Positions 11,707-45,689 of a DNA stretch of 64,000 bases are shown here, one piece after another (the first letter of the stretch is position 1; the number at the start of each line of letters is the position of its first letter). The position numbers were made by a program, and so were the translations under genes. The DNA is from Macrostomum lignano (Eukaryota). Below the pieces are notes generated by a model that did not search any database, was not told the DNA's origin, and worked only from the letters and a program-made list of their open reading frames with translations. The stretch spans positions 1 through 64,000 of the forward strand of contig NIVC01001110.1 in NCBI GenBank assembly GCA_002269645.1, in the 5' to 3' direction.

Positions 11707-11814
11707 GATGTTGTGGGTGACCAGGTGAGTTCGGCCGAGATCGTGTGGCCCCTACGAGGTTTTCTTCTCGTCCTTTTGCTAATTTGATTTTGATTCGGGC
11801 TGATGATAATGGTA

Positions 11815-12215: not shown

Positions 12216-12325
12216 CAGTTAGAAACGGATCCTTCGAGGTCGCTTGGGTGCAGAGTTCTGTACAGCTGCAGCGGAGGCGGTCTCAGCAGTGGCCTGCTGA
12301 GCGACTAAAGTCCTCGGCGGGGACT

Positions 12326-16146: not shown

Positions 16147-18733
16147 ATGTCCAGTTGCTACAACTGCGGAGAGGTTGGCCACTTTGCCCGCGACTGTCCC
16201 AATGAACGAGGCGACGGTGCTGGCGCTGCTGGCCAACAAAGAAAAACCGGCCGAGGCGGTGGCGGCGGCGGGCGAGGTCGCGGTCGCGGTCGCAGTCGAC
16301 GAGCCAACCGGCAAGATGGAGGCAGCGACGGCGGCGGTATTGTTGACAATAACGGCGTGCCGGTGTGCTTCAAGTGCAACCGATCCGGCCACCTGGCCCG
16401 CAACTGCTACCGGGGCGGCCTGACCCGCTGCTACAAGTGCAACTGCCTTGGCCATGTGGCCAGTCAATGCCAGCGAGATATTGTTGCCGGGGCCTGCTAC
16501 AACTGCGGCTCGTCTGAGCACATTCAGCGCGACTGTCCGGATCCTTTGGTGAAATCTTGCTACAGGTTTGCATTTTGTTCCTTGCATTGTTTGCCATGGG
16601 GAAAATGTTGTACGTTTTACGAGCATATCATGCGCTATATTCCCTCACGCTCACTTCTCTGCCTCTTTCTCTGCCTCCCTTTCTCTGCCTCCCTTTCTCT
16701 GCCTCCCTTTCTCTGCCTCCCTTTCTCTGCCTCCCTTTCTCTGCCTCCCTTTCTCTGCCTCCCTTTCTCTGCCTCCCTTTCTCTGCCTCCCTTTCTCTGC
16801 CTCTCTTTCTCTGCCTCCCTTTCTCTGCCTCTTTCTCTGCCTCCCTTTCTCTGCCTCTCTTTCTCTGCCTCCCCTTTCTCTGCCTCCCTTTCTCTGCCTC
16901 CCTTTCTCTGCCTCTTTCTCTGCCTCCCTTTCTCTGCCTCCCTTTCTCTGCCTCTTTCTCTGCCTCCCTTTCTCTGCCTTCCCTTTATCTGCCTCCCCTT
17001 CTCTGCCTCCCTATTCTACCGATCATGTATCAACCGTCCTCCACTGAGACTTAATTAATCCTGATTATTTAAGGATTCGTGGCCATACTTTTTTGTCGCC
17101 AATACGACTGCATCAACAGGGAATGTGCTATAAAATCCATCTGCTCTTTAGTTATTTGCTCTGCAAGCCTATAATTGAGTTTACAAGCAAATGAGAGCTA
17201 GTCTAGTAGGCTACAAGAAAACAGATTATTTCAATCGCTTACTGTCTTGAGTAGCACTATTAGGATTTTGTCATCCATTCTTATACCCAATTTGCCTGAA
17301 ACAGATGCGGCGACAAAACTCACCTGGCCAAAGATTGCCCGAATAGCGCAGCGGAGGATCGGTCTTGCTACAACTGCGGCCAAGTCGGCCATCTGAGCCG
17401 CGAGTGCACGCAGGCTAAAACTGGACAGCCAATCTGCTATAAGTAAGTGTAGCCCTGTGCGCTTGGAGCTCCCCAGTTGCTGGGCCAGCCTCCCAGATCC
17501 CCAGTTGCTGGGCCAGCCTCCCAGATCCCCAGTTGCTGGGCCAGCCTCCCAGATCCCAGTTGCTGGGCCAGCCTCCCAGAGTGTCAGTTGCTGGGCCAGC
17601 CTCCCAGATCCCCAGTTGCTGGGCCAGTCTCCCAGATCCCCAGTTGCTGGGCCAGCCTCCCAGAGTGTCAGTTGCTGGGCCAGCCTCCCAGATCCTCAGT
17701 TGCTGGGCCAGCCTCCCAGATCCTCAGTTGTTGGGCCAGCCTCCCAGATCCCCAGTTGCTGGGCCAGCCTCCCAGATCCCCAGTTGCTGGGCCAGCCTCC
17801 CAGAGTGTCAGTTGCTGGGCCAGCCTCCCAGATCCACAGTTGCTGGGCCAGCCTCCCAGATCCCCAGTTGCTGGGCCAGCCTCCCAGAGTGTCAGTTGCT
17901 GGGCCAGCCTCCCAGATCCCCAGTTGCTGGGCCAGCCTCCCAGATCCTCAGTTGCTGGGCCAGCCTCCCAGATCCTCAGTTGCTGTGCCAGCCTCCCAGA
18001 TCCCCAGTTGCTGGGCCAGCCTCCCAGATCCCCAGTTGCTGTGCCAGCCTCCCAGATCCCCAGTTGCTGGGCCAGCCTCCCAGATCCCCAGTTGCTGGGC
18101 CAGCCTCCCAGATCCCCAGTTGCTGGGCCAGCCTCCCAGATCCCCAGTTGCTGGGCCAGTCTCCCAGATCCCCAGTTGCTGGGCCAGCCTCCCAGATCCC
18201 CAGTTGCTGGGCCAGCCTCCCAGATCCCCAGTTGCTGGGCCAGCCTCCCAGATCCCCAGTTGCTGGGCCAGCCTCCCAGATCCCCAGTTGCTGGGCCAGC
18301 CTCCCAGATCCCCAGTTGCTGGGCCAGCCTCCCAGATCCCCAGTTGCTGGGCCAGCCTCCCAGATCCCAGTTGCTGGGCCAGCCTCCCAGATCCCCAGTT
18401 GCTGGGCCAGCCTCCCAGATCCCCAGTTGCTGGGCCAGCCTCCCAGATCCCAGTTGCTGGGCCAGCCTCCCAGATCCCCAGTTGCTGGGCCAGCCTCCCA
18501 GATCCCCAGTTGCTGGGCCAGCCTCCCAGATCCCCAGTTGCTGGGCCAGCCTCCCAGATCCCCAGTTGCTGGGCCAGCCTCCCAGAACCTCAGTCACCCA
18601 GCTCGCAGCATATTTGCATATACTCGAAAGCAAAATGTCAATCTTCACTAACAGCTGCCAGAAGCCGGGCCATGTATCCAAAGAGTGCCCAGACAAGGCG
18701 GACGCTGAGCAGGGCATCCCAGTCAGCGAATGA
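16147..18733 (+). CDS. CNBP: CCHC zinc-knuckle nucleic-acid-binding protein, CNBP/ZNF9 orthologue, 211 aa
   Basis: Exons 16147-16565, 17305-17442 and 18655-18733 (636 nt; both introns GT-AG, phase 2). Seven CX2CX4HX4C knuckles with an RGG/Gly-rich box between knuckles 1 and 2, the CNBP architecture. Confidence 0.93.
16655..17012. repeat. 14-bp pyrimidine minisatellite in CNBP intron 1
   Basis: Unit CTGCCTCCCTTTCT, ~25 copies with variants. Confidence 0.97.
17468..18590. repeat. 28-bp minisatellite in CNBP intron 2
   Basis: Unit CCCCAGTTGCTGGGCCAGCCTCCCAGAT, ~40 copies; explains the 28-aa periodic ORFs. Confidence 0.98.
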
Positions 18734-20446: not shown

Positions 20447-21001
20447 TCAGACCCCGGCCCCGGTCGGCTTCTTGTCTGTCGAAGCCTTGCGAGCGTCAGC
20501 AGACGACTTGCGATTGTCCACAGAGGACTTCCTGCTGGCCGGCTTCTCTGGCGGAATGATCAGCACGGGCCGGTGGGCGTGGTGCAGCACGTAGTCGGAC
20601 ACGCTGCCAAGGAATGTACGGCGCAGAGTGCCCATTCCGCGGTTGCCCATGATGATGATGCTGACGTTCTCCTCTTTGGCCACCTCGACAATTGACTGGC
20701 CGGGATTGTTGGTCACTCGTTCCACGAATTTGGTCTCGTTATTGACGCCCAGCTGGCGGCAGCGCTCCCGCACCGCTTTGCCAATCTGGCTGCCGGCTTT
20801 CATTGCGTCCTTCATCATGTTGGCGTACACTTCGGAGTTGGCCATCAGGCTGGCGCCGGTGCCCCGCGGCAGCGCCGGCGGCTCGATGGCGTACGTGAAG
20901 ATGAGAACATCGGACGACTTGTTCATGTTGTCGGCGTAAAAGGCCACGGCCCGATGGCTGTGGTCGCTGCCGTCCACAGCGATAAGAATGCGCCGGGTCA
21001 T
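20447..21001 (-). CDS. Universal stress protein (UspA family, ATP-binding type), intronless, 184 aa
   Basis: N-terminal RILIAVDGS; C-terminal IIIMGNRGMGTLRRTFLGSVSDYVLHHAHRPVLIIP containing the G-2X-G-9X-GS motif. Confidence 0.96.
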   Translation of the reverse strand: MTRRILIAVDGSDHSHRAVAFYADNMNKSSDVLIFTYAIEPPALPRGTGASLMANSEVYANMMKDAMKAGSQIGKAVRERCRQLGVNNETKFVERVTNNPGQSIVEVAKEENVSIIIMGNRGMGTLRRTFLGSVSDYVLHHAHRPVLIIPPEKPASRKSSVDNRKSSADARKASTDKKPTGAGV

Positions 21002-24939: not shown

Positions 24940-27900
24940 ATGAAATCCTCAGATGATGCCGACAGCTCAGCAGTCACCTCAAAAAACCACCAGACGGCTC
25001 AGCCATCGCAGACAGTCGCCAGAAATCCACTGCTTCACCGGCACTCGTCAAAGATCCTCAGACTAGCAGGCGATGGAGACTTACCTGGCACGCGCCTGGC
25101 CGCCAGTCCGAGCTACCAAGGCGTTATGCTCGGCGACTTGGCCAACGTGCCACCTGAGAATAGCCGCGTCGTACGCATCTTTCTATCGTCGACCTTCTCC
25201 GACATGTCGGCGGAGCGCAACTACCTCATGCAGCGCGTCAATCCCCGGCTGAAGAGGTTCTGTAGAGACACCTACGGACTGGAATTTCACACCATCGACA
25301 TGCGCTGGGGCGTAGGCGACGATGTTCAACTAGATCATCGGGGTCCGGAAATCTGCTACCAGGAAATTCAGAATGCCCTACTGACGTCAGCCGGCCCCTA
25401 TTTTATTTGCCTTCTCGGTCAACGGTATGGCAATCAGCCGCCAGCTGCAACCGTGGAGACTGACACCTTTGAAAAGATTATTTCGGCTCTTACAGCCGAT
25501 GGCCAGGACGTGTCCTGTCTGCGGGACTGGTACGCCATTGACGTCAACAGTCAGCCGCCGGTTTGCGTGCTGAAGCCGATTGCGACACCGGCTGAGGCGG
25601 TGAGCTGTGGATACTTTATAGTACCTGTAAAAATTAACACGAATTATTGTGGAAAAAGTGGATAAGTAGTACGAACTTCGGTCACAAATTCATAGGTAAA
25701 TAAGCAATTCCAAGGAAACGGTACTGGCCAACACGAATTTTATACCAAAAATTATGAGATGTGACCTTACAGAAATCAACTCCACCTTCCAGGGAAATGA
25801 GACACCCCTGCTTGAGTCTCAGTGCCGAGTTCGCGATCTATTTCGCTCATTTCTGCATTAAGCAGCATATAAATATTCAATATTAGTGGTGTTGTTTAGC
25901 ATTTTAGTAGAATTAAGTGATTTTTCTTCATGGTTCTTGATCAAATGAGCAAACGAAGCGTGTTTTGCTTGTTGCTATAATCGTTAAATACGAGCGTGAT
26001 CTCTACCGAAACTTTTTAGACCGATAAGGAGTTTCTTAGAAAGGCTCATCAGAGCTGGGCGGCTGTGAGCGATCGCCTAATTGACTTGATGCGAAGAGGC
26101 GCCGAGCTCTGCTTCCAATGCGGCCAAATTTCGCAGATGCAAATGAAGAAACTCACCGCTTCGGTCACGGAGACGGAGATTCTGAATGGAATTTTGTCAA
26201 TGCCCGAGAAGAAGCTGGCGCAGGCGCTGGCATTTGTCAGGGAGTACTCCAATCTGGAGACGCAGCGCGATCTGTCCCGCGGCAAGCTGTTTAAGTTTAT
26301 CGACCTAATGGATTCTGTCGACGAAGCTGGCAAGCCAGTGAAGGTTATTAACCCCACTGTGAACCAGATGGTAAAGCAACTCAATGAAAGTGTTCTAACT
26401 AGTTTGCCCAGCTCAAATGCATTTAAATACTCGCTCGAATGGACCGACGATCACGATGGCGCAAGTTTGGACTCGAAAGAAAACTATCTAGAGCGCTTCG
26501 GTAATGACTATTGCTGTGAAGTTCAGCGACTTGTGGCCGAATCCGTGCGGGAGAGCATGCGGCTCCGATCCGACGATCTCTACTCGGAGGTGCTGCAGCA
26601 CTCGACTGCGTGCGTCAACTACGTGAAGAAGTTCCAGGGTCGGCAAGAGATCATCGACAAGGTGAAAGCTTATGTGCAAGCGAGCAACACAATGGAGCCT
26701 CTGGTGGTGTACGGCGACTCGGGCAGCGGCAAGACCTCTCTACTTGGCAAGGCCGCCAGTCTGGTGCGAAGCTGGTTGCCAGAGTCCGATTCCAAAGATG
26801 CCATCGTGCTGTTGCGATTCCTCGGCACCAGTCCCGGTACGTCGATCATTCGACAGACACTCAAGTACCTGTGCCGTCAGCTCGCTGTGTTCGGCAACGA
26901 GGACGACCAGGAAAAGTGCGAGTCGCTCGACGACTTCAAGGAGATCTTGAACATCTTCTACTCCATGCTCGAACGCATGGGCCAGTTCAGGAGAATCTTG
27001 GTGTTCCTTGACAGTGTTGATCAGCTGGACAGCTCTGACGGTGCCTACCATCTGACGTGGGTGCGGACGCCATTGCCTGCCAACGTGAAGATGGTTGTGT
27101 CCACGCTGCCCAACATGTTCGACCTGCTGAGGACATTCAAAGGGAAACTGCCGAACCCAGACATCTACGTAGAGGTGACGCCACTGGAGACCAGTCTGTG
27201 CACCAGCATTTTGTCGGCTCTGCTCAGCGAACAAGGTCGCACTCTGAACGAGCAGCAATGGGCTCTGGTCGAGCAGGCATTCTCCAAGTGCTCACTGCCA
27301 ATCTATGTTCACCTGCTGTACCACGAGGTTTTGAGATGGCGCTCTTACCAACAGGTGGATGAGTCGTCTCTGCGCTACACCGTTCGTCAGGCAATCTTTC
27401 AGCTGTTCGAGAAACTCGAGTTGAAGCACGGCAGGCTGTTTGTAAGTACTTCATGTTAGTTACAGTAGCCCAGGCTAGTGAGAATAACCCACTACTATCC
27501 ACTTATCTACAGTGATTGGATTTGCTTTTCCAGACATCTCACGCCCTGGCATTCATCACTGCATCGAGAAACGGACTGTCAGAGTCGGAGCTGGAGGATC
27601 TGCTCAGTCTGGATGACGCCGTCCTCATTGACGTGTTTCAGCATCACCTGCCGCCCTTCATCTGCATCCCGCCGATCTGCTGGGCTCGACTTCGTCACGA
27701 CATTGGCTCTTACCTGGTCGAGAGAGAGGCGGACAACATCCGAGTAGTGTTCTGGTACCACCGACAGTTCATCGAGGTGGCTCAGGAGTACTTCTTGTCG
27801 GACGAAAAGACCAGACGGGACATTCACTCCATCATGGCAGACTACTTCTTGGGTCTGTGGAGCGGCAGGAGAAAGAAGTTCGTGTACCCAGCCTATCTGC

Positions 27901-30900
27901 GCAAGAAGCTCGTAAGTGATGACCGCTGCAGTTGATCTGCTCTCTGAAACGCCTTCAATTCGTTCTCACTGCTCCCCTCCAGAACCTGCCCGAGTTCTCA
28001 ATGGAGGACCGAGCCGTTCCCGAGCAGCCATTCGTGCTCCGCAAAGATGAGGACGGCACTGCTCAGTACAACCTGCGAAAGCTGAACGAGCTGCCGTGGC
28101 ACCTCATCAAGTCCGGTCGAGTGAACGAGTTCTACGACTACATTGTGTTTGACTACGACTTCATGTTCAACAAGCTGAAGGGCACGTCTCGGTACCTGCT
28201 GCTGAGAGACCTCGACCTCCCGCAGAAGCTCGGGGTCGAGTACATCAAAGAGGCCGAGCTCGTGTACAATGCAATCCGACTCTCCGCTCAGAGTCTTGTA
28301 TACGACCCTGTCAATCTGAGCGTTGATCTCATCGGTCGGCTCATCATGTACGAGAAGGACTGTCCTCGAGTGAAGCTGCTGCTCAACCAGTGTCGCCAGT
28401 CGAAACAGGCTCTCAGCAACTGCTGCCTCATCCCGAAAGTGCAGTGCTTCGACTCCGGCTCTGGAGTTCTATACTCCAGTTTCGATCTGGGTCTTGGACT
28501 AGGCATCATGCTTCCGAATGGTCAGGTGGCGGCCTTCTCGCTCATTAATAACGACATCACGTTTTACGATATCGAGGGAAATGAGATTAAGCGTTTTCCA
28601 AGCAACTACAACTTTGCAGTTAGTTTAAAGTACCTCGCAGAGGGCAACGTGCCCGTGTCAGAGGACTGCGTGGCAACCGTGATTGCTTTGCGGGATAAAA
28701 ACATGCCGGTAGATGAGGAGGAAGTAGAATCTGCCCAGGGCTCTGGTTCAGATTCAGAACAGTACGATGTTGTTCGCCTAGACTTTATTAATGGAAAAGC
28801 TACCAAGTTGATGTCTCTGGCTCGACCACACAAACTAAGCATTCAAGATATTCATATAGTCACGGAGAACTACATCCTCCTTGGGAAAAGCCAATCAGAT
28901 ACTAGCATCGACGTGAGTTTATTGTCAATAAAAGACAATATTCTAGTTCCCCTTTTGGATGATCAGGTTTTAGTGCCCTCATCTTTCGGACGGCAATACC
29001 TGGACCCAGAGCAAGACCGTATCTGCGTTGGAATTTCCACCAAAAAGTCGAAATCCACCTTTTTACTGTTCAAAAACTTGAAGACTGGGGCAGTTTTGAA
29101 CGGAGACTTGCTCGATATATTCCGATCTGTAGACAAGTCGAATCTCGAGGCTATTTGTTCGCCATCCGACATCAGTCAACGGCCACGAAATCCAGGACTA
29201 ATCGATCTGCTGCACCAGGCGACTCACATAGCATTGGGCTGTTGCTGTTTAGCCCCAGACGGCAGCGTCGTAGCACTACTGTCGGTGCACAGTGCCGAGC
29301 TGACCGAGTGCACTATACTAGTGACATTCTGCACATGTGCTGAGGCTCTGCGGCCGACCTATATTGTAGACACCGGCTCGAGATTTCTTTCGAAATCGAC
29401 GCAATGCATTCGCAGCGCCTCTATGAATCGAATCGCATTTTTTATTGAGATGTCAACAAATAAAACTGAAAGTTCCAGTCAAACGCCCTCCATGCGCAGA
29501 GGCTACATCTACGAATGTCACTCAAAGCGAGCGGTTGAGCTCCGCATTGATGACAATCTGAGCAGATTCTCAAAGTCGCTCAAAAAGTTCGGCAAATCGA
29601 TGCGTGCATGCTTCACAGAGAATGAAAAACTGCTGGTGACCAACGAATTCCAAACTTTACTGTTAGTTTGGTCAGTGCAAACTGGCCAGCTGTTGCACGG
29701 AATCAAGGATGGCGCAGCTGAGGGAATTCTGTGCGGTCAACCCAAGGGCACTGAGTTCATGACTATCTGCTACTTTCCCAACTTTCCTGACAGCATGAAC
29801 ATCTCATTGAAGGTCTACAATCTGGGAGTCTTTAATCAGGAAAATCAGCCAGTTGAGCAGGGTGGCATGACCCTGCCATTGTTCCCCACCGGTTCGCCTG
29901 GTCCTGCTGTGCCAAAGTTGCCGGAGAGCCTCGCAAGATAGAAGTCCTCGGCGAGGAACCAAAAGATACGCTGCTGTTGGACTCCGAGTCTCTGGAAGTC
30001 AGTCGTGTCGGTGCCGCAGGCCAGGCAGACTTTGTGCGAGTTCTTATTGATGAGCCGCGAGTTGAGCTGGTCAGAAAATCGTCCAATCAAGGCAAAGTGA
30101 TTCTGGTCCTGCCCAACTGCCAGCTTGAGAACGTGCTTTCTGTTTCACAGCAGATTCAGGAACCAGATGTGAAGCCAGAACCCTGCGCCATTGAGGAGCC
30201 CAAGAAGTTTTTAGAAGACCTAGAATTCACCGTGCTAGTCACCAAGGCTTCGGATGGGACTGAGAATCGTCACGTGACATCAGCGCCGTTGCGCGAGTAC
30301 AGCAGTTTGATATTTACGTCGACACCAATTTCGCAATTCTATTCCGATTCGCCTCTAATTTTTGTTGACGAATCGAGAAAACTATTGATGTCAATGACTT
30401 TCAATAAAAGCTTTCTATCATATGATGTTGCTGTTTCGACTATTAATCTAGAAACGTTTTCCGGAGAGCAAAGCAAAATTAACTTGGAAAACCTTGAAGC
30501 GGAGCATCCATTTTCCGATCAATTTCTAAGCGTGTTTAATTACGTAATTGCCAACGAGCTCAGGCCTGCCGCTAGAAACCGAGCTCAAACAGCGGATGAA
30601 AGTAACAAGGAACTGAGCCTTTACAATCTGACTACTGGGGAAAGGCAGTCGAAAATCAATAAGTTCTTTCAGTACTACCTGCGCAACAGAACTAGCTGCA
30701 TCGAAATCCAGTTCGTTGCAGAGCAACGGATTTTGAACCTGGCGATCTCGCAAAAGGAACAGGCTGCCAAGCTGATTCGCACCGGAGTTGGCGTGCCGTC
30801 CATATGGCTTGGCTTTGTCATCCGATTGGAGTATGGCGAAACGTCAATACCGCAGTCGAGCTTGTGTCAGCGCAACAGTAAATACTTCGATATGGGGCCT

Positions 30901-33900
30901 TCAGTTGCATTTCTGAGCGACAACCAGCACCTGGTGAACTACAAGCTGCAGATTGTGGACTACATGGCAGGAGACGTGATTCGCTGTATCCGGCCGGATG
31001 AGGAGCTGCACTTTCTGCAGCTGAAGGTTAGAAGTCTTAAAAATTTAAAGCATTCCTTTCGTAACTTCTACTACGAGTAATAGGTTTGTTTACACAATTT
31101 CCCTCACGAAAAATTACAGGTCACTCGCGACGAAAGTCTTCTTGTTGGCCAGCTGTTCTTTCCATCGTACGAGGTCAACGTTGCCGCGTTTGCAAAAATT
31201 AGTGCCAACGAAAAAGAAGAGGGCACATTCGCTATTTTGCCACCGCGTTGTGTTCAGGTGAATGATCTGCATAACATTGCTGAAAAATTTCTGAGAATAA
31301 TCAGTACTCGACCGTAGCTCAGGACAGGGGGTCTTTCTCGAAAATTGCGTAAGTTCTATGGTAAGTTCGATCTTAAGTTAGAACTTTACGCTCTGCGAAA
31401 GATCAATACTAAGCCAGTTTCTCGAAACTCGCTTAGACTTTGCGTGACTTACGCGATTCGTAAGTCTAGTTAAGTCGATAAAATGTTGTCTATGGAAGAG
31501 AAGACAAAAAATCAAATCTAAAAAGCTAATTTTAATAATATGGATTTCTTGCTTTATTTTTTACTAACAGTAATAGGAATTGGGCACCAGTTTTATTTTA
31601 TTTTATTTTATTTTATTTTATTTTATTTTAGGAAAGTACCCAAAGAAATACATGCATGTACAAGCAAAAGATTATAATGTTTTAGAACGCGAGCAGTTGT
31701 TAACCAGTTTTTTTGGCTCGACAGCTAAAAGTCGTAACAGATCAACTCAATTAAAGTAGACAATCAACCCGCACAACTCCACATGGACCCCCTAAATCAC
31801 AGAACTCACCAGTTGTCGTGGACATCACTACCAATCACACCCTCAGACCAGAGTTTCTCTTCGGACGTCGGCTCTCATTGAATTCCCTGTCCTTCCAGAG
31901 GCTCCATGGCTTTCCGCATAGGTTGAACAAGTAGTATTTATTGCAGCATGCTGAAAATAATTCTTCAACGTAGAAGCGCCATAGCAATCACCACATTGAT
32001 TTCGGATCTCTAAGATTAAACACTTAAGAACGTAGTTGAGATCGCGCTTGCTCAAACTCGGATGCGGGTGCCAATGGCAAGTCACTTTAGACAGCTTCGA
32101 CTTCAGCAACACTAAACTAAGTGATTCAATGCAAATAACTCGAAAATGTCACAGAAAAGGTTTAGTAGAGATAAAGACAACTACTCACTCTTAAATATAG
32201 GATTCAATACTTGGTCACGAGTGCGCGAAGCAACACGATATATATTTCTCGTGCATTAAATGACTCCAGCCAATACGCGATCACGAGCTACGAAAGCGAA
32301 GAAGTCTGTGCTGAAAATTGAGATGAAGAAAGAATCGTAACTTTTTCTCGAGTTTCCTTATACATGCGCTGTATGTACAGCTTTCCCATTGTGTATTTTC
32401 ACGACGTTTACTTTATGTAATAAAACTATTTAACATTTAAGAAAACCGACCCTGCACCCGCCTTCTGACTGCCTATCAAAAAGTCAAATATGATACGAGT
32501 ATACATTGGCAACTGAAAGCATGAGCATACGGATGGGCCATAGAACAATGCTTTTAAACGAGCCTCATACTTTTTTCGCCATGAATTGGCTCGTTTCCGG
32601 TCCTGAGTTATCAAGTTGTCCTTGGATTTTATACATTTTTATCGTGTTACGAGTGCGCCTAGCTGGAGGGTTTTTGCCATAGACGCACAAGTCAAAGTGC
32701 TTGATTCCCATTCTTATTTAATCCAACATGTGTGGCTAAAGTAGACAAGGGTGAAGCTGGGGGTGTGGAGTTAGACTTGAACCATAGACAAAATATGCGC
32801 GAGCTAGTCTGAACATTCTTGCACGATGGAAAGAAGATTATGCTTGTAGTCTATGGCTGTTATGCTAAATATAGAAACATCGCGCATTACATTCTTGCAC
32901 GATTGACATTCCTGCACGGAGTGCACATGTAAATTCAAGGTGCTTTTACCATAGACACTTGCATTTCTGCACGCATATGGCGACTTCCAAAGCATTCTTG
33001 CACGCTGGATCAAATAAGAATACCCAGCACAGTCGTTTTTGGTAAACGGCACCAAATCAAAATTTCTCTATGGTTAAAACGTACAATGTTAATATGGCCA
33101 AACGGGGTATAAATATATCGCTCGTATTATTTCCGTTTATTTTAGTGTATGGTCTAAAGCATAAGCTTCGGACTCGCATCCAGGGCTCGGCTTTGCCTCG
33201 GCCAAAAAAAGCACATGTTCTTTGTATCTAAGGACCAACTTCCTTTACGATTAATTCGAAGTTTTCCCGAAGTGAAGCTCTCAGTGCACGATTGAGCACT
33301 ACTCAACCTGCTTTTTAAAACAGGTGTACCGCATCAGCGATGGCTCACGACTAGCCAACTATCTGTTCGAGACCAGCCCTCTTGGCTTCTGTATCTTCGG
33401 ACAGCCTGACCGAGACCTATTGGTGTTGTTTCAAAACAAGCCCCTACAACTGTTCTGTCTGGTTGAACCACCCGAAGACGCTGAGGCGACAGCAACAGTG
33501 CATTCAGTGCAGCGCACGGAAGCGGCCGAAAGTCTGGCTTCTTTGTCGCACAATGAAATGGATTACGAAAATCAACTGGACAGTCTACGTGAGCTTCTTG
33601 GTTATTTGTAATATTTTTAATTGGATTTCTTGAAGTTTTACTGGGATTATATAGTGTCCGAGCTCCGTCCCCGCTTCCTGTCCCAGAACGAGTCCTTTGG
33701 GCCTCCTGTCCCAGCACGAGTCCTTTGGGTCTCCTGTCCCAGACAAGTCCTTTGGGTCTCCTGTCCCAGCACGAGTCCTTTGGGTCTCCTGTCCCAGCAC
33801 GAGTCCTTTGGGTCTCCTGTCCCAGCACGAGTCCTTTGGGTCTCCTGTCCCAGCACGAGTCCTTTGGGCCTCCTGTCCCAGCACGAGTCCTTTGGGCCTC

Positions 33901-34612
33901 CTGTCCCAGCACGAGTCCTTTGGGTCCCCCGTACTGCACGAGTCCTTTGGATCCCCTGTCCCAGCACAAGTCCTTTGGGTCCCCCGTTACTGCACGAGTC
34001 CTTTGGGTCTCCTGTCCCAGCACGAGTCCTTTGGGTCTCCTGTCCCAGCACGAGTCCTTTGGGTCTCCTGTCCCAGCACGAGTCCTTTGGGCCTCCTGTC
34101 CCAGCACGAGTCCTTTGGGTCTCCTGTCCCAGCACGAGTCCTTTGGGTCTCCTGTCCCAGAACGAGTCCTTTGGGTCTCCTGTCCCAGCACGAGTCCTTT
34201 GGGTCTCCTGTCCCAGCACGAGTCCTTTGGGTCCCCTGTCCCAGCACGAGTCCTTTGGGTCCCCTGTCCCAGCACGAGTCCTTTGGGTCTCCTGTCCCAG
34301 CACGAGTCCTTTGGGTCTCCTGTACCAGCACGAGTCCTTTGGGTCTCCTGTCCCAGCACGAGTCCTTTGGGTCCCCTGTCCCAGCACCAGTCTTCAGGCG
34401 TCTCCAGTCCCACAGTGTCCAATCAGTCTAACAGTCTCAGTTTAACATTCCACTCAATTCAATGGATGGCAGGTGTAGCCCTGGGCCAGGCCATGCTCGA
34501 ACTGGCCGTCGCTCGCCCTTCGGACCCCGTCGCATTTCTTGCCAACGCTCTGCTACGATTGAGGCTTTCCTGCGTTGGAGACCCTCAGGTTTCCACCGAG
34601 AAGCGAGCTTAA
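24940..34612 (+). CDS. NACHT and WD-repeat (NWD1/NWD2-like) STAND NTPase: DUF4062-NACHT-divergent propeller-Dpy-30, ~2000 aa
   Basis: Exons 24940-25599, 26020-27441, 27534-27911, 27983-31026 (frame break ~29857-29941), 31120-31257, 33324-33600 and 34473-34612, all GT-AG and phase-consistent. Motifs: [21 protein letters not shown] (DUF4062), Walker A GDSGSGKT, Walker [49 protein letters not shown]. Confidence 0.88.
31591..31631. repeat. (TTTTA)n microsatellite
   Basis: 8 tandem TTTTA units in the NWD intron; could be a (TAAAA)n retro-element tail on minus. Confidence 0.9.
33580..34612 (+). other. Dpy-30 (D/D, RIIa-like) motif split by the last intron of the NWD gene
   Basis: Joining 33600 to 34473 (phase 1) gives [37 protein letters not shown], matching the Dpy-30 consensus L.qaL.el...RP.DP..fLA.yL. 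Confidence 0.7.
33675..34390. repeat. 28-bp minisatellite in the last NWD intron
   Basis: Unit GTCCCAGCACGAGTCCTTTGGGTCTCCT, ~25 copies. Confidence 0.97.
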
Positions 34613-35124
34613 TAATAAAGAATGCTTAACATTGTTGAATTAAAATATTTGCTTTACTACCAGCAAAGTATGTATGCTTACATTTCGAGGTCAAATTGTG
34701 CGTGATTTGATGACGTGCAAATGTAGAGATGAAGAATAGTGATAAACCGGTTCGTGTCGTCAGTGTGGACAAATTTTGTTTTGCTAATAACTCGTGATTC
34801 TAGTCTAACATTCTAAATCGCTTAGAACGAATGCAACGTTTTATTGTATGCTATAAATTATAAAAATGCAAACTTTTTTCAGACTTTGAATATTAATTTC
34901 TCAAATATACATTTATATAAGGTGCACAAAAGTATGCTCATCTCATACTTTCAACTTCTTTCTGGCTGCCTAATACCACTATCTACTAGTAAGTAGCATA
35001 AGTGGGATTGCTACTTGCTATTCTTGTTGATTGATTAGTATAGGAAACTTCATTTAAATACTCATAACTTTGCCTACTTTGCCCAGTTTGAATTCTGTTC
35101 ATTGCAGTTTCATTTTCCCGTGGT

Positions 35125-38100
35125 TCAGTTGGTTACAGTGTCACTAACACGAAATTCAGTTGGTTCCAGTGTCACTAACACGGAATTCAGTTGGTTCCAG
35201 TGTCACTAACACGGAATTCAGTTGGTTCCAGTGTCCCTAACACGGAATTCAGTTGGTTCCAGTGTCACTAACACGGAATTCAGTTGGTTCCAGTGTCACT
35301 AACACGAAATTCAGTTGGTTCCAGTGTCACTAACACGAAATTCAGTTGGTTCCAGTGTCACTAACACGAAATTCAGTTGGTTCCAGTGTCACTAACACGG
35401 AATTCAGTTGGTTCCAGTGTCACTAACACGAAATTCAGTTGGTTCCAGTGTCACTAACACGGAATTCAGTTGGTTCCAGTGTCACTAACACGGAATTCAG
35501 TTGGTTCCAGTGTCACTAACACGAAATTCAGTTGGTTCCAGTGTCACTAACACGGAATTCAGTTGGTTCCAGTGTCACTAACACGGAATTCAGTTGGTTC
35601 CAGTGTCACTAACACGAAATTCAGTTGGTTCCAGTGTCACTAACACGAAATTCAGTTGGTTCCAGTGTCACTAACACGGAATTCAGTTGGTTCCAGTGTC
35701 ACTAACACGGAATTCAGTTGGTTCCAGTGTCACTAACACGGAATTCAGTTGGTTCCAGTGTCACTAACACGAAATTCAGTTGGTTCCAGTGTCACTAACA
35801 CGGAATTCAGTTGGTTCCAGTGTCACTAACACGAAATTCAGTTGGTTCCAGTGTCACTAACACGGAATTCAGTTGGTTCCAGTGTCACTAACACGGAATT
35901 CAGTTGGTTCCAGTGTCACTAACACGAAATTCAGTTGGTTCCAGTGTCACTAACACGGAATTCAGTTGGTTCCAGTGTCACTAACACGAAATTCAGTTGG
36001 TTCCAGTGTCACTAACACGGAATTCAGATGGTTCCAGTGTCACTAACACGAAATTCAGTTGGTTCCAGTGTCACTAACACGGAATTCAGTTGGTTCCAGT
36101 GTCACTAACACGGAATTCAGTTGGTTCCGGTGTCACTAACACGGAATTCAGTTGGTTCCAGTGTCACTAACACGAAATTCAGTTGGTTCCAGTGTCACTA
36201 ACACGAAATTCAGTTGGTTCCAGTGTCACTAACACGGAATTCAGTTGGTTCCAGTGTCACTAACACGAAATTCAGTTGGTTCCAGTGTCACTAACATGGA
36301 ATTCAGTTGGTTCCAGTGTCACTAACACGAAATTCAGTTGGTTCCAGTGTCACTAACACGAAATTCAGTTGGTTCCAGTGTCACTAACACGGAATTCAGT
36401 TGGTTCCAGTGTCACTAACACGGAATTCAGTTGGTTCCAGTGTCACTAACACGGAATTCAGTTGGTTCCAGTGTCACTAACATGAAATTCAGTTGGTTCC
36501 AGTGTCACTAACACGAAATTCAGTTGGTTCCAGTGTCACTAACACGAAATTCAGTTGGTTCCAGTGTCACTAACACGGAATTCAGTTGGTTCCAGTGTCA
36601 CTAACACGGAATTCAGTTGGTTCCAGTGTCACTAACACGAAATTCAGTTGGTTCCAGTGTCACTAACACGAAATTCAGTTGGTTCCAGTGTCACTAACAC
36701 GAAATTCAGTTGGTTCCAGTGTCACTAACACGAAATTCAGTTGGTTCCAGTGTCACTAACATGGAATTCAGTTGGTTCCAGTGTCACTAACACGAAATTC
36801 AGTTGGTTCCAGTGTCACTAACACGAAATTCAGTTGGTTCCAGTGTCACTAACACGAAATTCAGTTGGTTCCAGTGTCACTAACACGGAATTCAGTTGGT
36901 TCCAGTGTCACTAACACGGAATTCAGTTGGTTCCAGTGTCACTAACACGAAATTCAGTTGGTTCCAGTGTCACTAACACGAAATTCAGTTGGTTCCAGTG
37001 TCACTAACACGAAATTCAGTTGGTTCCAGTGTCACTAACACGGAATTCAGTTGGTTCCAGTGTCACTAACACGAAATTCAGTTGGTTCCAGTGTCACTAA
37101 CACGAAATTCAGTTGGTTCCAGTGTCACTAACACGAAATTCAGTTGGTTCCAGTGTCACTAACACGGAATTCAGTTGGTTCCGGTGTCACTAACACGAAA
37201 TTCAGTTGGTTCCAGTGTCACTAACACGGAATTCAGTTGGTTCCAGTGTCACTAACACGAAATTCAGTTGGTTCCAGTGTCACTAACACGGAATTCAGTT
37301 GGTTCCGGTGTCACTAACACGAAATTCAGTTGGTTCCAGTGTCACTAACACGGAATTCAGTTGGTTCCAGTGTCACTAACACGAAATTCAGTTGGTTCCA
37401 GTGTCACTAACACGAAATTCAGTTGGTTCCAGTGTCACTAACACGAAATTCAGTTGGTTCCAGTGTCACTAACACGAAATTCAGTTGGTTCCAGTGTCAC
37501 TAACACGAAATTCAGTTGGTTCCAGTGTCACTAACACGGAATTCAGTTGGTTCCAGTGTCACTAACACGAAATTCAGTTGGTTCCAGTGTCACTAACACG
37601 GAATTCAGTTGGTTCCAGTGTCACTAACACGAAATTCAGTTGGTTCCAGTGTCACTAACACGAAATTCAGTTGGTTCCAGTGTCACTAACATGAAATTCA
37701 GTTGGTTCCAGTGTCACTAACACGGAATTCAGTTGGTTCCAGTGTCACTAACACGAAATTCAGTTGGTTCCAGTGTCACTAACACGAAATTCAGTTGGTT
37801 CCAGTGTCACTAACACGGAATTCAGTTGGTTCCAGTGTCACTAACACGAAATTCAGTTGGTTCCAGTGTCACTAACATGAAATTCAGTTGGTTCCAGTGT
37901 CACTAACACGGAATTCAGTTGGTTCCAGTGTCACTAACACGAAATTCAGTTGGTTCCAGTGTCACTAACACGAAATTCAGTTGGTTCCAGTGTCACTAAC
38001 ACGGAATTCAGTTGGTTCCAGTGTCACTAACACGAAATTCAGTTGGTTCCAGTGTCACTAACACGAAATTCAGTTGGTTCCAGTGTCACTAACATGAAAT

Positions 38101-39905
38101 TCAGTTGGTTCCAGTGTCACTAACACGGAATTCAGTTGGTTCCAGTGTCACTAACACGAAATTCAGTTGGTTCCAGTGTCACTAACACGAAATTCAGTTG
38201 GTTCCAGTGTCACTAACACGGAATTCAGATGGTTCCAGTGTCACTAACACGGAATTCAGTTGGTTCCAGTGTCACTAACACGGAATTCAGTTGGTTCCAG
38301 TGTCACTAACATGAAATTCAGTTGGTTCCAGTGTCACTAACACGAAATTCAGTTGGTTCCAGTGTCACTAACACGAAATTCAGTTGGTTCCAGTGTCACT
38401 AACACGGAATTCAGTTGGTTCCAGTGTCACTAACACGAAATTCAGTTGGTTCCAGTGTCACTAACACGGAATTCAGTTGGTTCCAGTGTCACTAACACGA
38501 AATTCAGTTGGTTCCAGTGTCACTAACACGGAATTCAGTTGGTTCCAGTGTCACTAACACGAAATTCAGTTGGTTCCAGTGTCACTAACACGAAATTCAG
38601 TTGGTTCCAGTGTCACTAACACGAAATTCAGTTGGTTCCAGTGTCACTAACACGAAATTCAGTTGGTTCCAGTGTCACTAACACGAAATTCAGTTGGTTC
38701 CAGTGTCACTAACATGGAATTCAGTTGGTTCCAGTGTCACTAACACGGAATTCAGTTGGTTCCAGTGTCACTAACACGGAATTCAGTTGGTTCCAGTGTC
38801 ACTAACACGGAATTCAGTTGGTTCCAGTGTCACTAACATGAAATTCAGTTGGTTCCAGTGTCACTAACACGAAATTCAGTTGGTTCCAGTGTCACTAACA
38901 CGAAATTCAGTTGGTTCCAGTGTCACTAACACGAAATTCAGTTGGTTCCAGTGTCACTAACACGAAATTCAGTTGGTTCCAGTGTCACTAACACGAAATT
39001 CAGTTGGTTCCAGTGTCACTAACACGGAATTCAGTTGGTTCCAGTGTCACTAACACGAAATTCAGTTGGTTCCAGTGTCACTAACACGAAATTCAGTTGG
39101 TTCCAGTGTCACTAACATGAAATTCAGTTGGTTCCAGTGTCACTAACACGAAATTCAGTTGGTTCCAGTGTCACTAACACGAAATTCAGTTGGTTCCAGT
39201 GTCACTAACATGAAATTCAGTTGGTTCCAGTGTTACTAACATGGAATTCAGTTGGTTCCAGTGTCACTAACATGAAATTCAGTTGGTTCCAGTGTCACTA
39301 ACACGGAATTCAGTTGGTTCCAGTGTCACTAACACGAAATTCAGTTGGTTCCAGTGTCACTAACACGGAATTCAGTTGGTTCCAGTGTCACTAACACGGA
39401 ATTCAGTTGGTTCCAGTGTCACTAACACGAAATTCAGTTGGTTCCAGTGTCACTAACATGAAATTCAGTTGGTTCCAGTGTCACTAACACGGAATTCAGT
39501 TGGTTCCAGTGTCACTAACATGAAATTCAGTTGGTTCCAGTGTCACTAACACGGAATTCAGTTGGTTCCAGTGTCACTAACACGGAATTCAGTTGGTTCC
39601 AGTGTCACTAACACGGAATTCAGTTGGTTCCAGTGTCACTAACACGAAATTCAGTTGGTTCCAGTGTCACTAACATGAAATTCAGTTGGTTCCAGTGTCA
39701 CTAACACGGAATTCAGTTGGTTCCAGTGTCACTAACACGAAATTCAGTTGGTTCCAGTGTCACTAACACGGAATTCAGTTGGTTCCAGTGTCACTAACAC
39801 GGAATTCAGTTGGTTCCAGTGTCACTAACATGGAATTCAGTTGGTTCCAGTGTCACTAACACGGAATTCAGTTGGTTCCAGTGTCACTAACATGAAATTC
39901 AGTTG
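35125..39905. repeat. 31-bp satellite array, ~154 copies, highly homogeneous
   Basis: Unit CAGTTGGTTCCAGTGTCACTAACAYGRAATT; units abut with no spacers. Confidence 0.99.
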
Positions 39906-40434
39906 AGTCCAGGCACTGTTTATTCGAGCACAAATTCACGCGCACTCTGCATGCGTCCTTTATCCGTACTGTAAAACTTTTTCCTTACAAAACGCCGGGG
40001 CAGACTGCAGTGGATTAAATCTAGAAATTGATTTCTTTTGGGTAAGTATGCCAGCCCTTTCTCACCCGCCATTCTGTTGAGTTGATCTTTGCCGTCGCAA
40101 CGGCTTATGGCCTGATCGGAGGTCGGTACTAGCAAAACAATATTAGTTAGTGCGAACTCTGCACCACACAGCAGACTTGGGCCAGTTCAGTGCGGACCTG
40201 AACTGCAGGCCTTACCTACCGTATGCGCGGTGACGCTGCAATGTCGAAACCAAATGAGAGTTTTATTTTGTCTGCTTAAAAATCTAAGAAAGAACACCGT
40301 GTTAGTAATATTATAGTCTTGTTAATAATATTTATTTAAATGCTTAGTTTTGTCAAAATAATTCAATCAGTTGAAGAGATGCTTAACTATGTACTCGTAG
40401 GAGCATTAATAACTTACTGTAAATTTATAAACTG

Positions 40435-41896: not shown

Positions 41897-44757
41897 ATGG
41901 ACAATATTCTTGTACACTCGGACGAGCATGTAGGCATGCGAGTTCCCATGAAATACCGAGACGAGAAGGCCGTAGTGCGGCCGGCCAACCTGGTTGAGCT
42001 GATCGCCGAGGTCGACAAGATATTCAGCGAGGACACGGTCAATGTCGACTACGTGCACGCCCTGATGGAGTCGTACAAGAGCAACCCGGCTGACTGGCGC
42101 GCCTATGCCAAATTCGATCCGCACAGGTACACTCGCAACCTGGTCAGCGAGGGCAACGGCAAGTACAACATGATGCTGTTGTGCTGGAACGAAGGCCAGG
42201 GCTCGTCTATACACGACCACGCAAATAGCCACTGCTTCATGAAGGTGCTGCAGGGATCCTTGATTGAGACTCAGTATTACTGGCCGGCTAAGAAGGGCCA
42301 GCCGATGAAGCGGAAACAGACTACCGAGCTCATGCTCGATCAGTGCGCCTATATTGATGGTGAGTAGGTGAACAGCTGGGCACCATGAACTTTCGGCGTC
42401 ACTTCCATTTTCTCTCTCATCTCTCACCATCTTTCCTCTTTGACTCTCCTCTCCCTCCCTCAAACTGTATTTACCTCCCTCAAACTGTATTTACCTCCCT
42501 CAAACTGTATTTACCTCCCTCACACCGTCTCTCCCTCCCTCAAACTGTCTCTCCCTCCCTCAAACTGTCTCTCCCTCCCTCACACTCTCTCCCTCCCTCA
42601 AACTGTCTCTACCTCCCTCACACTCTCTTCCTCCCTCAAACTGTCTCTACCTCCCTCACACTCTCCCTCCCTCAAACTGTCTCTGCCTCCCTCACACCGT
42701 CTCTCCCTCCCTCAAACTGTCTCTCCCTCCCTCAAACTGTATTTACCTCCCTCAAACTGTATTTACCTCCCTCACGCCGTCTCTCCCTCCCTCAAACTGT
42801 ATTTACCTCCCTCACACCGTCTCTCTCTCCCTCAAACTGTATTTACCTCCCTCAAACTGTATTTACCTCCCTCACACCGTCTCTCCCTCCCTTAAACTGT
42901 CTCTCCCTCCCTCAAACTGTATTTACCTCCCTCAAACTGTATTTACCTCCCTCACACCGTCTCTCCCTCCCTCAAACTGTCTCTCCCTCCCTCAAACTGT
43001 ATTTACTTCCCTCAAACTGTCTCTCCCTCCCTCAAACTGTCTCTACCTCCCTCACACTCTCTCCCTCCCTCAAACTGTCTCTGCCTCCCTCACACCGTCT
43101 CTCCCTCCCTCAAACTGTCTCTCCCTCCCTCAAACTGTATTTACCTCCCTCACACCGTCTCTCCCTCCCTCATACTGTATTTAACTCCCTCAAACTGTAT
43201 TTACCTCCCTCAAACTGTATTTACCTCCCTCACACTCTCTCCCTCCCTCAAACTGTCTCTCCCTCCCTCAAACTGTATTTACTTCCCTCAAACTGTCTCT
43301 CCCTCCCTCAAACTGTCTCTACCTCCCTCACACTCTCTCCCTCCCTCAAACTGTCTCTGCCTCCCTCACACCGTCTCTCCCTCCCTCACACCGTCTCTCC
43401 CTCCCTCAAACTGTATTTACCTCCCTCAAACTGTATTTACCTCCCTCAAACTGTATTTACCTCCCTCACACTCTCTCCCTCCCTCAAACTGTCTCTGCCT
43501 CCCTCACACCGTCTCTCCCTCCCTCAAACTGTCTCTCCCTCCCTCAAACTGTATTTACCTCCCTCAAACTGTATTTACCTCCCTCAAACTGTCTCTCCCT
43601 CCCTCAAACCGCCTCTCCCTCCCTCAAACCGTCTCTCCCTCCCTCCCTCAAACTGTCTCTGCCTCCCTCACACTCTCCCTCCCTCAAACTGTCTCTACCT
43701 CCCTCACACTCTCTCCCTCCCTCAAACTGTATTTACCTCCCTCAAACTGTCTCTCCCTCCCTCAAACTGTATTTACCTCCCTCAAACTGTCTCTCCCTCC
43801 CTCAAACTGTATTTACCTCCCTCAAACTGTCTCTCCCTCCCTCAAACCGCCTCTCCCTCCCTCAAACCGTCTCTCCCTCCCTCAAACTGTCTCTGCCTCC
43901 CTCACACTCTCCCTCCCTCAAACTGTATTTACCTCCCTCAAACTGTCTCTCCCTCCCTCAAACTGTCTCTCCCTCCCTCAAACCGTCTCTCCCTCCCCAG
44001 TTATCTACACCGCATCTATCTAGAACTCAAACTCAAAATAATAGCTAAAGTCGCATGCGCCATTCGCAGACACCATCGGCCTACACCGGGTTGAGAACCC
44101 GTCCCACGTGGACTCGGCGATCACCCTGCACCTGTACATACCGCCCTACTCTGAGTGCCACTGTTTCGATGAGAATACTGGCAAGCCGAGAACGGCTAAG
44201 GTCACCTTCTGGAGCAAGTACGGCCAGAGGACGCGAGAAGCGGTGAGCAGTGTGGCAGCTGTTTTGACTGGAAATTTTCATGACCAATTAAATTTAGTTA
44301 TATTTATCACGTGACCGTCTCTCCCGCCCTCCCATCGTCTCTCACTCCTTTTCACCGTCTCTCCCTACCTCTCACCATCTCACCCTCCCTCTCACAATTT
44401 CTTCCTCCCTCTCATTGTCTCTCCCTTTCACACTCCCTCCGTTATACGTTCATGGAACTGGAAATTTCCATGGTCTAATTGCACTCGACCATAATGGTAT
44501 CAGTCACGTGAATGATACCACGTGACTGACCGCGTGTAATCGCTCGGGCTGCTCGTGCACCGCCACTCGACTCAAACTGGTTTCATTTTTTCCAGCTTAC
44601 TCTAAAAAAGAACTGAATGAAGCGTCAAGACACACCCCCTTCTTTGAACTTGCCGCCGTTTTACAACGCACATAGATAGAACTTTTGCAACAAGCCTGTA
44701 GCCCGTATATCTTTATTGCAGCCGACTGAGAGCGCCGACCCAGACAGCAGCAAGTGA
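41897..44757 (+). CDS. CDO1: Cysteine dioxygenase type 1, 223 aa from the first ATG
   Basis: Exons 41897-42359, 44070-44242 and 44722-44757 (672 nt; phases 1 and 0). Motifs: YTRNLV (R60), [18 protein letters not shown] (H86/H88/C93), [10 protein letters not shown] (H140), TLHLYIPP (H155/Y157), TFWSKYG. Confidence 0.95.
42400..44000. repeat. Compound ~20-bp pyrimidine-rich minisatellite in CDO intron 1
   Basis: Interleaved units CTCCCTCAAACTGTATTTAC, CTCCCTCAAACTGTCTCTCC and CTCCCTCACACCGTCTCTCC. Confidence 0.97.
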
Positions 44758-45689
44758 GGCCTCCCAGCCAGGCCCAGAGCCAAACACAACTGCGTCAGTG
44801 CGAATTTCAACTCAGTTTATTTTAAACACTTTGTACAGCAGCAATTCATTTGAATTTTGATAATACGATTGTGGTGAAGTAAATAACTGGTGGCAATTCT
44901 TGCCATTGCTAATAGATAATGCCATTTGTTCGTACTGGAACTTGCGCACGAAGACGTAAGCTATTTTTCCGTTTGTTATACTCGGTGAAAGTTGCTTTCT
45001 TCGAAAATATTTTCTCGCTTATAGAGGCTGAGTTCGTTTGAAATTTTATTTTAAATTCAGGCTAAATTGCTTGAAGTAACAAATTGTCACTGTCATTTTA
45101 TCCGCTGTCAGCATGCTGTTGTATTTCTACTTTTTGTTTTAGTTGCACCAATTTACCGCCTTAATTTGAATTGATCTGTTAGAAATAGTTTCAATCGAGC
45201 CATTAATTAGCGTCGATATGCATTGCACCTGTGCCGTCAAGGATGATTATGCTGATTTGTTATTTTCTGCGCGAATTAATCTAATTTCATCTCAATAAAA
45301 CTCGTATATATGGATTTGAGATGTGCAAGATCAAATACATAACTACATTATTGTGTATCATCTATTCTAAAGCGCAACTACAACACACGAGAATCATATT
45401 TTCTTATCAACCATGCAGAGCCAATTGTGGCATTTAAATGCTGTTCCTGGCTACTTATGTGAGTAGAGTGAACTGCATCGGAGTGATATACAAGTCATTC
45501 TGACTATCATTTTAAACCGAAAATAATTCTAAAGAGCTACGATTTTATACGATTAAAATCTGACAGATAAAGTAGCCCTATCTCAAATAAGGCTAAAAAT
45601 CTCACATCTCACGGGCACATTGATCCGTATCAAGGCGTCAAATCAATCTCCTCAAAGGTGCAAAATCAATCTGTACAAAAGCTCCAGAT

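Follow-up and report, generated by a model that had tools for sequence, protein, structure and literature searches.

Introduction

How does a Dpy-30 motif come to lie behind the last large exons of a STAND NTPase gene, and does it belong to the protein that this gene encodes? The question is raised by an NWD2-like gene of the flatworm Macrostomum lignano that occupies positions 24940-34612 of the forward (+) strand in a stretch of 64,000 nucleotides (contig NIVC01001110.1, positions 1 to 64,000, assembly GCA_002269645.1), referred to in what follows as the window. An earlier reading of the letters of this DNA, made with neither database searches nor knowledge of the organism (the sequence-only reading), had proposed a protein of DUF4062-NACHT-WD type fused to a C-terminal Dpy-30 docking domain by a splice from 33600 to 34473, and had remarked that such an architecture was not known from characterized proteins. 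Here we have followed up that proposal by computational means. The domain order of the protein, the conserved split of its dimerization/docking (D/D) tail and the distribution of this tail are established by the data below, and we consider it quite probable that the window gene is one paralogue within a branch of the NWD2 STAND family confined to flatworms and that its split Dpy-30 tail is joined at 33588^34473, with dimerization and docking as the likely role of the tail.

Results

Identity and Fold of the C-Terminal Tail

The last exon of the gene, exon 7 (34473-34612, +), lies behind an acceptor reading ...ATGGCAG/GT at 34472/34473 and ends with a TAA stop codon at 34610-34612, which is followed 2 nt further on by an AATAAA polyadenylation signal that can be read directly from the sequence (34614-34619, +). 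The coding-like segment behind a GGCAG acceptor that had been pointed out from the letters alone is therefore present as described. By itself exon 7 codes for half a Dpy-30 domain, namely the end of helix 1, the loop and helix 2, and the first helix is found at the end of exon 6 (33324-33588, +). The tail passes the Pfam Dpy-30 profile (PF05186) with 29.7-30.9 bits against a cut-off of 22 (E 2-5e-7, profile positions 13-39 of 42); in the comparison that had been recommended as a check the values were 30.7 bits and E 2.6e-7. The companion check against the Pfam RIIa profile gave a weak match of 17-18 bits, below the cut-off.

A further gauge is a profile for which only tails from other species were used. 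When it was run on the window, translated in six frames and cut into 1,948 pieces, the exon at 34473-34612 was the only significant match, with E 8.8e-9 for the tail piece and E 0.22 for the runner-up, so that, judged by its sequence, the segment is a coding segment and not a chance resemblance. Searched against the PDB, the tail profile finds DYDC2 (8j07, E 7e-11; 8wzb, 2e-9) and DPY30 (3g36, 3e-8), the C-terminus of AK7 (3e-6) and NME5 over several entries (3e-3 to 0.12), along with DYDC1, yeast Sdc1 and, weakly, PKA RI. A model of the last 59 aa computed with AlphaFold2 (AF2) from a 10-sequence alignment has a predicted local distance difference test (pLDDT) score of 80, rising to >90 over residues 11-40, and consists of a helix-loop-helix with helices at residues 3-27 and 32-47; the RPxDP(I/V)xFLA turn and the second helix are both present. 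The top 29 matches that Foldseek returns from the PDB are all D/D domains (Dpy-30/DYDC/RII), the closest being DYDC2 8wzb_A with a root-mean-square deviation of 0.6 Å over 35 columns. Sequence profile and predicted fold thus agree in assigning the product of the last exon to the Dpy-30 dimerization/docking tails.

The Exon 6-7 Junction

The sequence-only reading had exon 6 end in ...LDSLRELL followed by G/GTTATT at 33600/33601, with an 872-nt minisatellite-filled intron (33601-34472) beyond. The letters are as it gave them, its splice from 33600 to 34473 is indeed phase-consistent (phase 1) and the interval is indeed filled with repeats, 28 bp in 26.4 copies at 33676-34412 (TRF score 1255, 93% matches). 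What does not hold is the choice of donor and, with it, the intron length. The better-supported donor is TAC/GTGAGC at 33588/33589, located 12 nt upstream, in the same phase and with the same acceptor. The evidence for it comes from A0A1I8JL63 (P0252), an M. lignano entry of UniProt with 56 aa ending in ...STEKRA, which was obtained as a cluster mate of a 56-aa M. lignano protein returned by the tail-alignment profile search. Because this protein is 100% identical to the translation of 33558-33588 joined to 34473-34612, intron 6 is assigned to 33589-34472 (+), a phase-1 intron of 884 nt that includes the alternative donor at 33600/33601, and the public gene model splices over the minisatellite to the acceptor at 34472/34473. 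With the 33588^34473 join the protein reads ...LDSLR/VALGQ..., without ELLG.

Further comparisons bear on the same choice. The GTGAGC donor is that of intron 1 of the window gene as well, and it is homologous at the DNA level to the donor of a paralogous M. lignano locus, L001 (CTGGACATGCTGA|GTGAGATTCAAGG in the window, CTGGACAGTCTAC|GTGAGCTTCTTGG in L001). This locus carries the gene model BOX15_Mlig021732g1 (Mlig021732), which comes from the RNA-seq-guided Mlig_3_7 annotation (PMC5730564) and whose protein is called P0003 below. With the 33588 donor the helix-1 segment aligns free of gaps with EYLDMLK of the paralogue and DYFEESGL of trematodes; with the 33600 junction phmmer aligns SLRELLG to YLKRCFG of DYDC2, i.e. 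across the exon junction. The Pfam Dpy-30 score does not separate the two donors (29.7 versus 30.1 bits). We also considered a donor TT/GTAATA at 33608/33609 in combination with an upstream acceptor CTCAG/T, which keeps 'GYL' in the manner of the Paragonimus sequence 'LLGYLE', and rejected it, as it places ~6 extra residues in the domain and is unsupported by P0252 or the paralogue.

UniProt lists the tail of the window gene under separate 56-aa entries with the name 'DUF2783 domain-containing protein'. One of them, A0A1I8GQD6 (P0140), has a P where A0A1I8JL63 has an L and is otherwise the same, an indication of a second allele or copy; an exact look-up of A0A1I8GQD6 on contigs found no record.

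Distribution of the Split Tail

The tail is divided by a phase-1 intron in each of the four genes for which DNA was compared, reading ...EYLDML / K / PALASSMAEVANARP in M. lignano L001, YLEESGL / A / EILEQSLLEVANRRP in Fasciola gigantica (L002) and YFEESGL / T / EMMKKAMFDVVDKRP in Schistosoma mansoni (L003). In all 4/4 (window, L001, L002 and L003) the P of RPxDP comes 15 codons behind the split codon, with the same phase. In RefSeq, S. mansoni is represented by the model Smp_145280, which does not splice at the phase-1 donor behind YFEESGL but continues to ...SKFLCSTFKRNTTGSLNAV and a stop (L003 42947-43036, NC_031502.1); the true terminal Dpy-30 exon, EMMKKAMFDVVDKRPTDPISSIAKSLLEQHHSQNN followed by a stop, is located ~2.4 kb downstream (L003 ~45362-45472) and is missing from this model, and the models of seven other Schistosoma species include it.

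At the level of protein sequence tail-bearing homologues are also found in Paragonimus, Calicophoron, Fasciolopsis and the monogenean Cichlidogyrus, the last three of which were added, together with M. lignano groups, by a profile search over 1.84 billion representatives and subsequent cluster look-ups (two other large protein searches yielded little, one protein with the C-terminal profile and three with the tail profile). The M. lignano paralogue groups Mlig032501, Mlig012608 and A0A1I8J1S9 all end in the Dpy-30 motif, with 34-45 bits, and the carriers of the tail now comprise at least 5 M. lignano paralogue groups, six trematode genera and one monogenean. Macrostomum, trematode and one-monogenean NWD-like proteins for which the models are complete end in the Dpy-30 tail; the models of Protopolystoma and of the cestode Schistocephalus stop before it. 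Since the tail recurs in the trematodes, in Cichlidogyrus and in further M. lignano groups, we take it, on this comparative evidence, to be an old and conserved feature of rhabditophoran NWD-like genes and not an artefact of prediction. The proposed fusion of an NWD-type STAND NTPase with a C-terminal Dpy-30 domain is in this way borne out both by the Pfam score, which exceeds the cut-off, and by the recurrence of tail and intron in the paralogue and in trematodes.

None of the 102 non-flatworm NWD1/2 matches obtained with the whole conceptual protein carries the tail. A CaaX-like C-x-x-x end (for example CVIS, CQIL, CTIL or CALL) was found in 28/102 of them; such ends occur in molluscs, a brachiopod, spiders, a mite, hemichordates, an echinoderm, amphioxus, a coral and Strongyloides, and do not occur in insects or flatworms. 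A near-identical copy of the paralogue, M. lignano A0A1I8HIM4 (P0001), ends in ...EYLDMLTSTGQLNGRGSEREARGPDRVPGAV..., the Dpy-30 exon in a shifted frame, which reflects either a frameshifted copy or a mis-spliced model.

As to novelty, a literature search combining NWD2 with Dpy-30, NACHT with Dpy-30 and Macrostomum with NACHT found no publication on an NWD/NACHT plus Dpy-30 architecture, in agreement with the earlier remark that it is not known from characterized proteins. Several predicted proteins in UniProt and NCBI nevertheless carry NACHT plus PF05186, and uncharacterized relatives of the window protein stand in the databases as A0A1I8HEY0, BOX15_Mlig021732g1 and FGIG_08899. The architecture is thus visible in public predicted proteomes and, as far as we have found, undescribed in the literature.

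The NWD-Type Body and the Refined Gene Model

In the refined model the window gene codes for a protein of ~2,015 aa with the order DUF4062/TeTIR, NACHT, NWD-type winged helix, helical region, diverged propeller and Dpy-30 D/D domain. Exon 1 (24940-25599, +) holds the start codon and the N-terminal DUF4062 (PF13271, 38.5 bits against a cut-off of 24.7), of the TIR-like TeTIR type, and terminates at a GCG/GTGAGC donor. An RWG motif has been documented for TeTIR domains, which a preprint describes as a TIR-like NADase fold with an RWG loop (bioRxiv 10.64898/2026.09.21.753143), and RWG is retained in the window protein (DMRWGV). Exon 2 (26020-27441, +) codes for a linker and the NACHT NTPase (PF05729, 40.5 bits against a cut-off of 26.7; AAA_16, 46.6 bits) with Walker A GDSGSGKT and Walker B FLDSVD, at 86% protein identity to P0003, and exon 3 (27534-27911, +) for the NWD1/2-type winged helix (PF25469 HTH_NWD1, 34.4 bits against a cut-off of 27), at 99% identity to P0003.

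The ~3 kb of exon 4 (27983-31026, +), which contains the break in the frame discussed below, encode a helical region and a putative degenerate beta-propeller that hhalign places colinear with the WD40 half of NWD2; in tblastn P0003 matches the window at 27935-29899 in one frame and at 30220-31260 in another. Between this large exon and the exon beginning at 33324 lie two elements that the sequence-only reading did not include. Intron 4 (31027-31119, +) is a 93-nt segment, GTTAGA...TTACAG, with two in-frame stops and with no counterpart in P0003, where the coding sequence is continuous; it represents a paralogue-specific intron or an insertion that needs to be removed by splicing. Exon 5 (31120-31257, +) has 46 codons, ends in ...ILPPRCVQ and forms part of the last propeller blades, as seen from its splice sites and a tblastn match to residues 1660-1707 of P0003. 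Intron 5 (31258-33323, +), with donor CAG/GTGAAT and acceptor AAAACAG/GTG, measures 2,066 nt and corresponds to an intron of 106 nt in the paralogue. Exon 6 (33324-33588), finally, comprises the last propeller blade, an acidic linker, the first Dpy-30 helix and base 1 of a split Arg codon; its protein shows 47% identity to P0003 and can be aligned with the final WD blade of NWD2.

Of the label DUF4062-NACHT-WD the first two parts are confirmed by Pfam, and the third does not hold in the sense of Pfam repeats. In the ~1,000-aa C-terminal half of the window protein there is no Pfam WD40 or propeller match at E up to 1, and PF00400 is likewise missing from other flatworm homologues. The flatworm C-terminal half is nonetheless colinear with the WD region of NWD2 in hhalign (probability 87%, E 4e-6), the last blade aligning clearly with NWD2 TIRVFRISDGKKIA, and an AF2 model of the last 300 aa, at an overall pLDDT of 50, contains blade-like beta strands at pLDDT 70-83. 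The 'WD' part of this protein appears to be a remote, degenerate propeller.

A search with the whole conceptual protein places it in the same family. The top group of matches consists of M. lignano 'NACHT domain-containing proteins' with 56-69% identity. In the second, NWD-like proteins from Schistosoma, Paragonimus and Fasciola are intermingled with NWD2 from molluscs, brachiopods and arthropods, with E ~1e-200 over the N-terminal ~48%, and further arthropod and other NWD1/2 matches are found lower down. The top non-flatworm matches are NWD2 proteins (E 5e-211 and below).

Identity to the paralogue is unevenly distributed along the gene. Window positions 26142-28596 and L001 positions 10054-12509 form a 2.45-kb tract of 90% DNA identity and ~99% protein identity that spans most of exon 2, exon 3, the start of exon 4 and two introns. 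Outside this tract the gene is 73-80% identical in DNA to Mlig021732 or unalignable (36-50% in protein). Gene conversion between the paralogues may have produced this patchwork.

Surroundings of the Gene

The window is eukaryotic and rich in minisatellites. A 4.8-kb minisatellite at 35124-39912 with 154 copies of 31 bp (97% matches) begins ~500 nt after the stop codon of the gene, and ~20 more tandem-repeat arrays are present, such as those at 17470-18594, 42449-43997, 54235-56280 and 60777-62348. Pieces of an LTR-type retroelement lie on the reverse (-) strand at ~10375-13560 (RNase H 10375-11088, reverse transcriptase 11149-11706, gag-like 13087-13560), and since they are broken into separate open reading frames (ORFs) the element is degraded. 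An ORF of 184 aa at 20447-21001 (-) gives a full-length match to the universal stress protein family (Pfam Usp, 100 bits); this neighbouring gene precedes the NWD-like gene by ~4 kb and is oppositely oriented.

Discussion

Weighing the Explanations

Several of our observations count against the explanation given at the outset. One is a break in the reading frame near 29917 (29909-29941, +), which the sequence-only reading had passed over. The upstream frame meets a TAG at 29939-29941 and the homology goes on in the -1 frame, so that, if the break is real, translation would end at 29941, far before the tail; a reading frame uninterrupted across the exons is thus not found in the window copy, which has this one break. 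In addition, the sole direct model of the exon 6-7 junction is a 56-aa fragment; the Pfam match spans profile positions 13-39 only, helix 1 being divergent and positions 1-12 staying outside the alignment whichever donor is used; the Foldseek E-values of 0.2-4 are not significant, the query domain being tiny; the 300-aa AF2 model is of low confidence (pLDDT 50), and the arrangement of propeller and tail is unreadable from it; and the exchange of a CaaX-like end for a Dpy-30 tail, discussed below, is read from C-terminal sequences only.

As the paralogue has a single uninterrupted exon at the position of the break, the latter is best described as an apparent 1-nt deletion in the given sequence and not as an intron. 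An intron of 116 nt (29813-29928) that would bridge the frame change was rejected, the segment being homologous to the paralogue (LPLFPTG versus LLPMYTQ), which has no intron there. The window copy could then be a decaying duplicate in which the stop at 29941 is real and the Dpy-30 exon a relic, with intact paralogues keeping the architecture. In keeping with this, there is no room for an intron at the break, the gene body is missing from public M. lignano proteomes, where the best match is only 67-69% identical, the 93-nt segment at 31027-31119 adds stop codons that the paralogue does not have, and redundancy is high in the DV1 genome, where blocks of at least 95% identity add up to 180 Mb (PMC5730564). 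Set against these points are the 370 open codons past the break and the four later exons that are intact with usable splice sites, an outcome of probability ~2e-8 if constraint were lacking; a tail exon 100% identical to an annotated product; and a sequence consistent with a long-read assembly, whose typical error is the deletion of single bases. With 370 codons open beyond the break and no damage to any later exon, our preference is for an assembly error or a lesion of very recent date; that the copy is a decaying pseudogene we regard as possible, though the less probable course.

The two remaining alternatives concern the transcript, and both leave the main NACHT protein without the tail. 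A main mRNA that retains intron 6 would end in GYL at the stop codon 33609-33611, with the Dpy-30 exon restricted to a minor isoform or unused. There is an in-frame stop 21 nt past the 33588 donor, intron 6 is long and repeat-filled, and the S. mansoni RefSeq model does exactly this; that model, however, looks like a prediction error in view of the exon held by the models of the seven other Schistosoma species. Moreover, the donor is the GTGAGC used by intron 1, no poly(A) signal follows 33611 and AATAAA comes directly after the stop at 34612, and the preservation of tail and intron position from Macrostomum to trematodes requires that the tail be translated, all of which leaves read-through very unlikely. 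Slightly more improbable still is a separate short mRNA, begun within exon 6 or by spliced-leader trans-splicing, for a stand-alone Dpy-30 protein of 56 aa. It would account for the only public model of the junction, which has 56 aa and begins at an internal ATG at 33558, in an animal in which trans-splicing and polycistronic units are common (PMC5730564). The open frame that runs from 33324 into this ATG is homologous to the last blade of the paralogue, though, exon 7 alone would give half a domain, and full-length models from M. lignano, Schistosoma, Fasciola, Paragonimus and Calicophoron have the tail on a NACHT protein with the same intron. We therefore retain the view that the tail is the C-terminus of the NWD2-like protein.

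Relation to Known Systems

With NWD2 (KIAA1239) and NWD1 the window protein has in common its N-terminal two-thirds, made up of DUF4062/TeTIR, NACHT and winged helix, at 35-40% identity over ~48% of the query. It differs from them in that its C-terminal half is ~300 aa longer and matches their WD region at the profile level only, with no recognizable WD40 repeats, in the enlargement of the M. lignano family to at least 5 paralogue groups, and in the ends of the chains, which are Dpy-30 D/D domains in flatworms and CaaX-like or insect-type tails in other phyla. The C. elegans orthologues of NWD2 and NWD1 are T05C3.2 and QUI-1. Of these QUI-1, the NWD1 orthologue, functions in ciliated sensory neurons (PMC8871372), and weak NADase activity has been described for the TeTIR domain of NWD2 (bioRxiv 10.64898/2026.09.21.753143).

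For the tail the best matches in both sequence and fold are DYDC1/DYDC2 and DPY30, with which it shares RPxDPxxFLA and the helix-loop-helix (36-43% identity to DYDC2 over the domain); its helix 1, DYENQLDSL, diverges from the canonical YLxxxVxPxL of the DYDC/DPY30 type. Those are small proteins of 99-177 aa in which the D/D domain is the main feature, whereas here it makes up the last ~45 residues of an NTPase of ~2,000 aa. In design the protein resembles AK7 and NME5 (as well as Chlamydomonas RSP2/RSP23), catalytic proteins with a terminal Dpy-30 tag; the flatworm tail profile matches AK7 at residues 677-719 of 724 and the NME5 tag. As AK7 and NME5 demonstrate, docking of a large enzyme by a Dpy-30 tag at its C-terminus is an established design. 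The bodies differ, nucleotide kinases docked in the axoneme in the one case and a STAND ATPase known from sequence only in the other. The D/D domains of PKA RII/RI that bind AKAP belong to the same fold class (RIIalpha 4zp3 is among the Foldseek matches), but they are N-terminal where the flatworm domain is C-terminal, and the tail motif is of Dpy-30 type, in line with the RIIa score below cut-off. What PKA-AKAP does provide is the concept of a signaling enzyme anchored by a dimeric four-helix bundle.

By analogy with these systems, two tails would pair into an X-type four-helix bundle, making the protein a constitutive tail-to-tail dimer, and the groove of the bundle would dock on an amphipathic scaffold helix, an arrangement known from ASH2L-DPY30, RSP3/RSPH3-DYDC/NME5 and AKAP-RII. 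Because of this docking the tail may act as an address tag that fixes the site of the TeTIR-NACHT machine. Activation of the N-terminal effector would still require nucleotide-driven oligomerization of NACHT. As the tail matches DYDC slightly better than DPY30, and in light of the QUI-1 data, a ciliary dock for flatworm NWD proteins is conceivable, which is speculation on our part. Since a CaaX-like box is a common ending of NWD1/2 proteins outside the flatworms, the comparison further suggests that in flatworms a protein dock may have replaced a C-terminal lipid anchor; a literature search for NWD with CaaX found no paper linking NWD1/2 to prenylation.

Implications

There are practical consequences. 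Two annotation errors come to light: Smp_145280 is without its last exon, and the tail of the window gene has a 56-aa protein entry of its own. With the tail as bait, partners can be sought, and tail-less forms allow a comparison, in a species, M. lignano, in which transgenesis works (PMC5730564).

More generally, the C-terminal modules of animal STAND proteins have so far been sensor repeats, and the flatworm proteins add to these a dedicated D/D domain. What the conserved STAND proteins NWD1 and NWD2 do in animal cells is poorly understood, and the occurrence of a docking tag in one lineage as against CaaX-like ends in others suggests that the site of anchoring matters. In its furthest form, which we think improbable, the argument would be that rhabditophorans traded an ancestral prenyl (CaaX) anchor for a DYDC-like dock, so that a TeTIR-NACHT dimer sits on an RSPH3-type or AKAP-like scaffold, perhaps in cilia, and that anchoring is a need of NWD proteins at large. 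If this were true, C-terminal anchoring would be an unrecognized general requirement of the whole NWD family.

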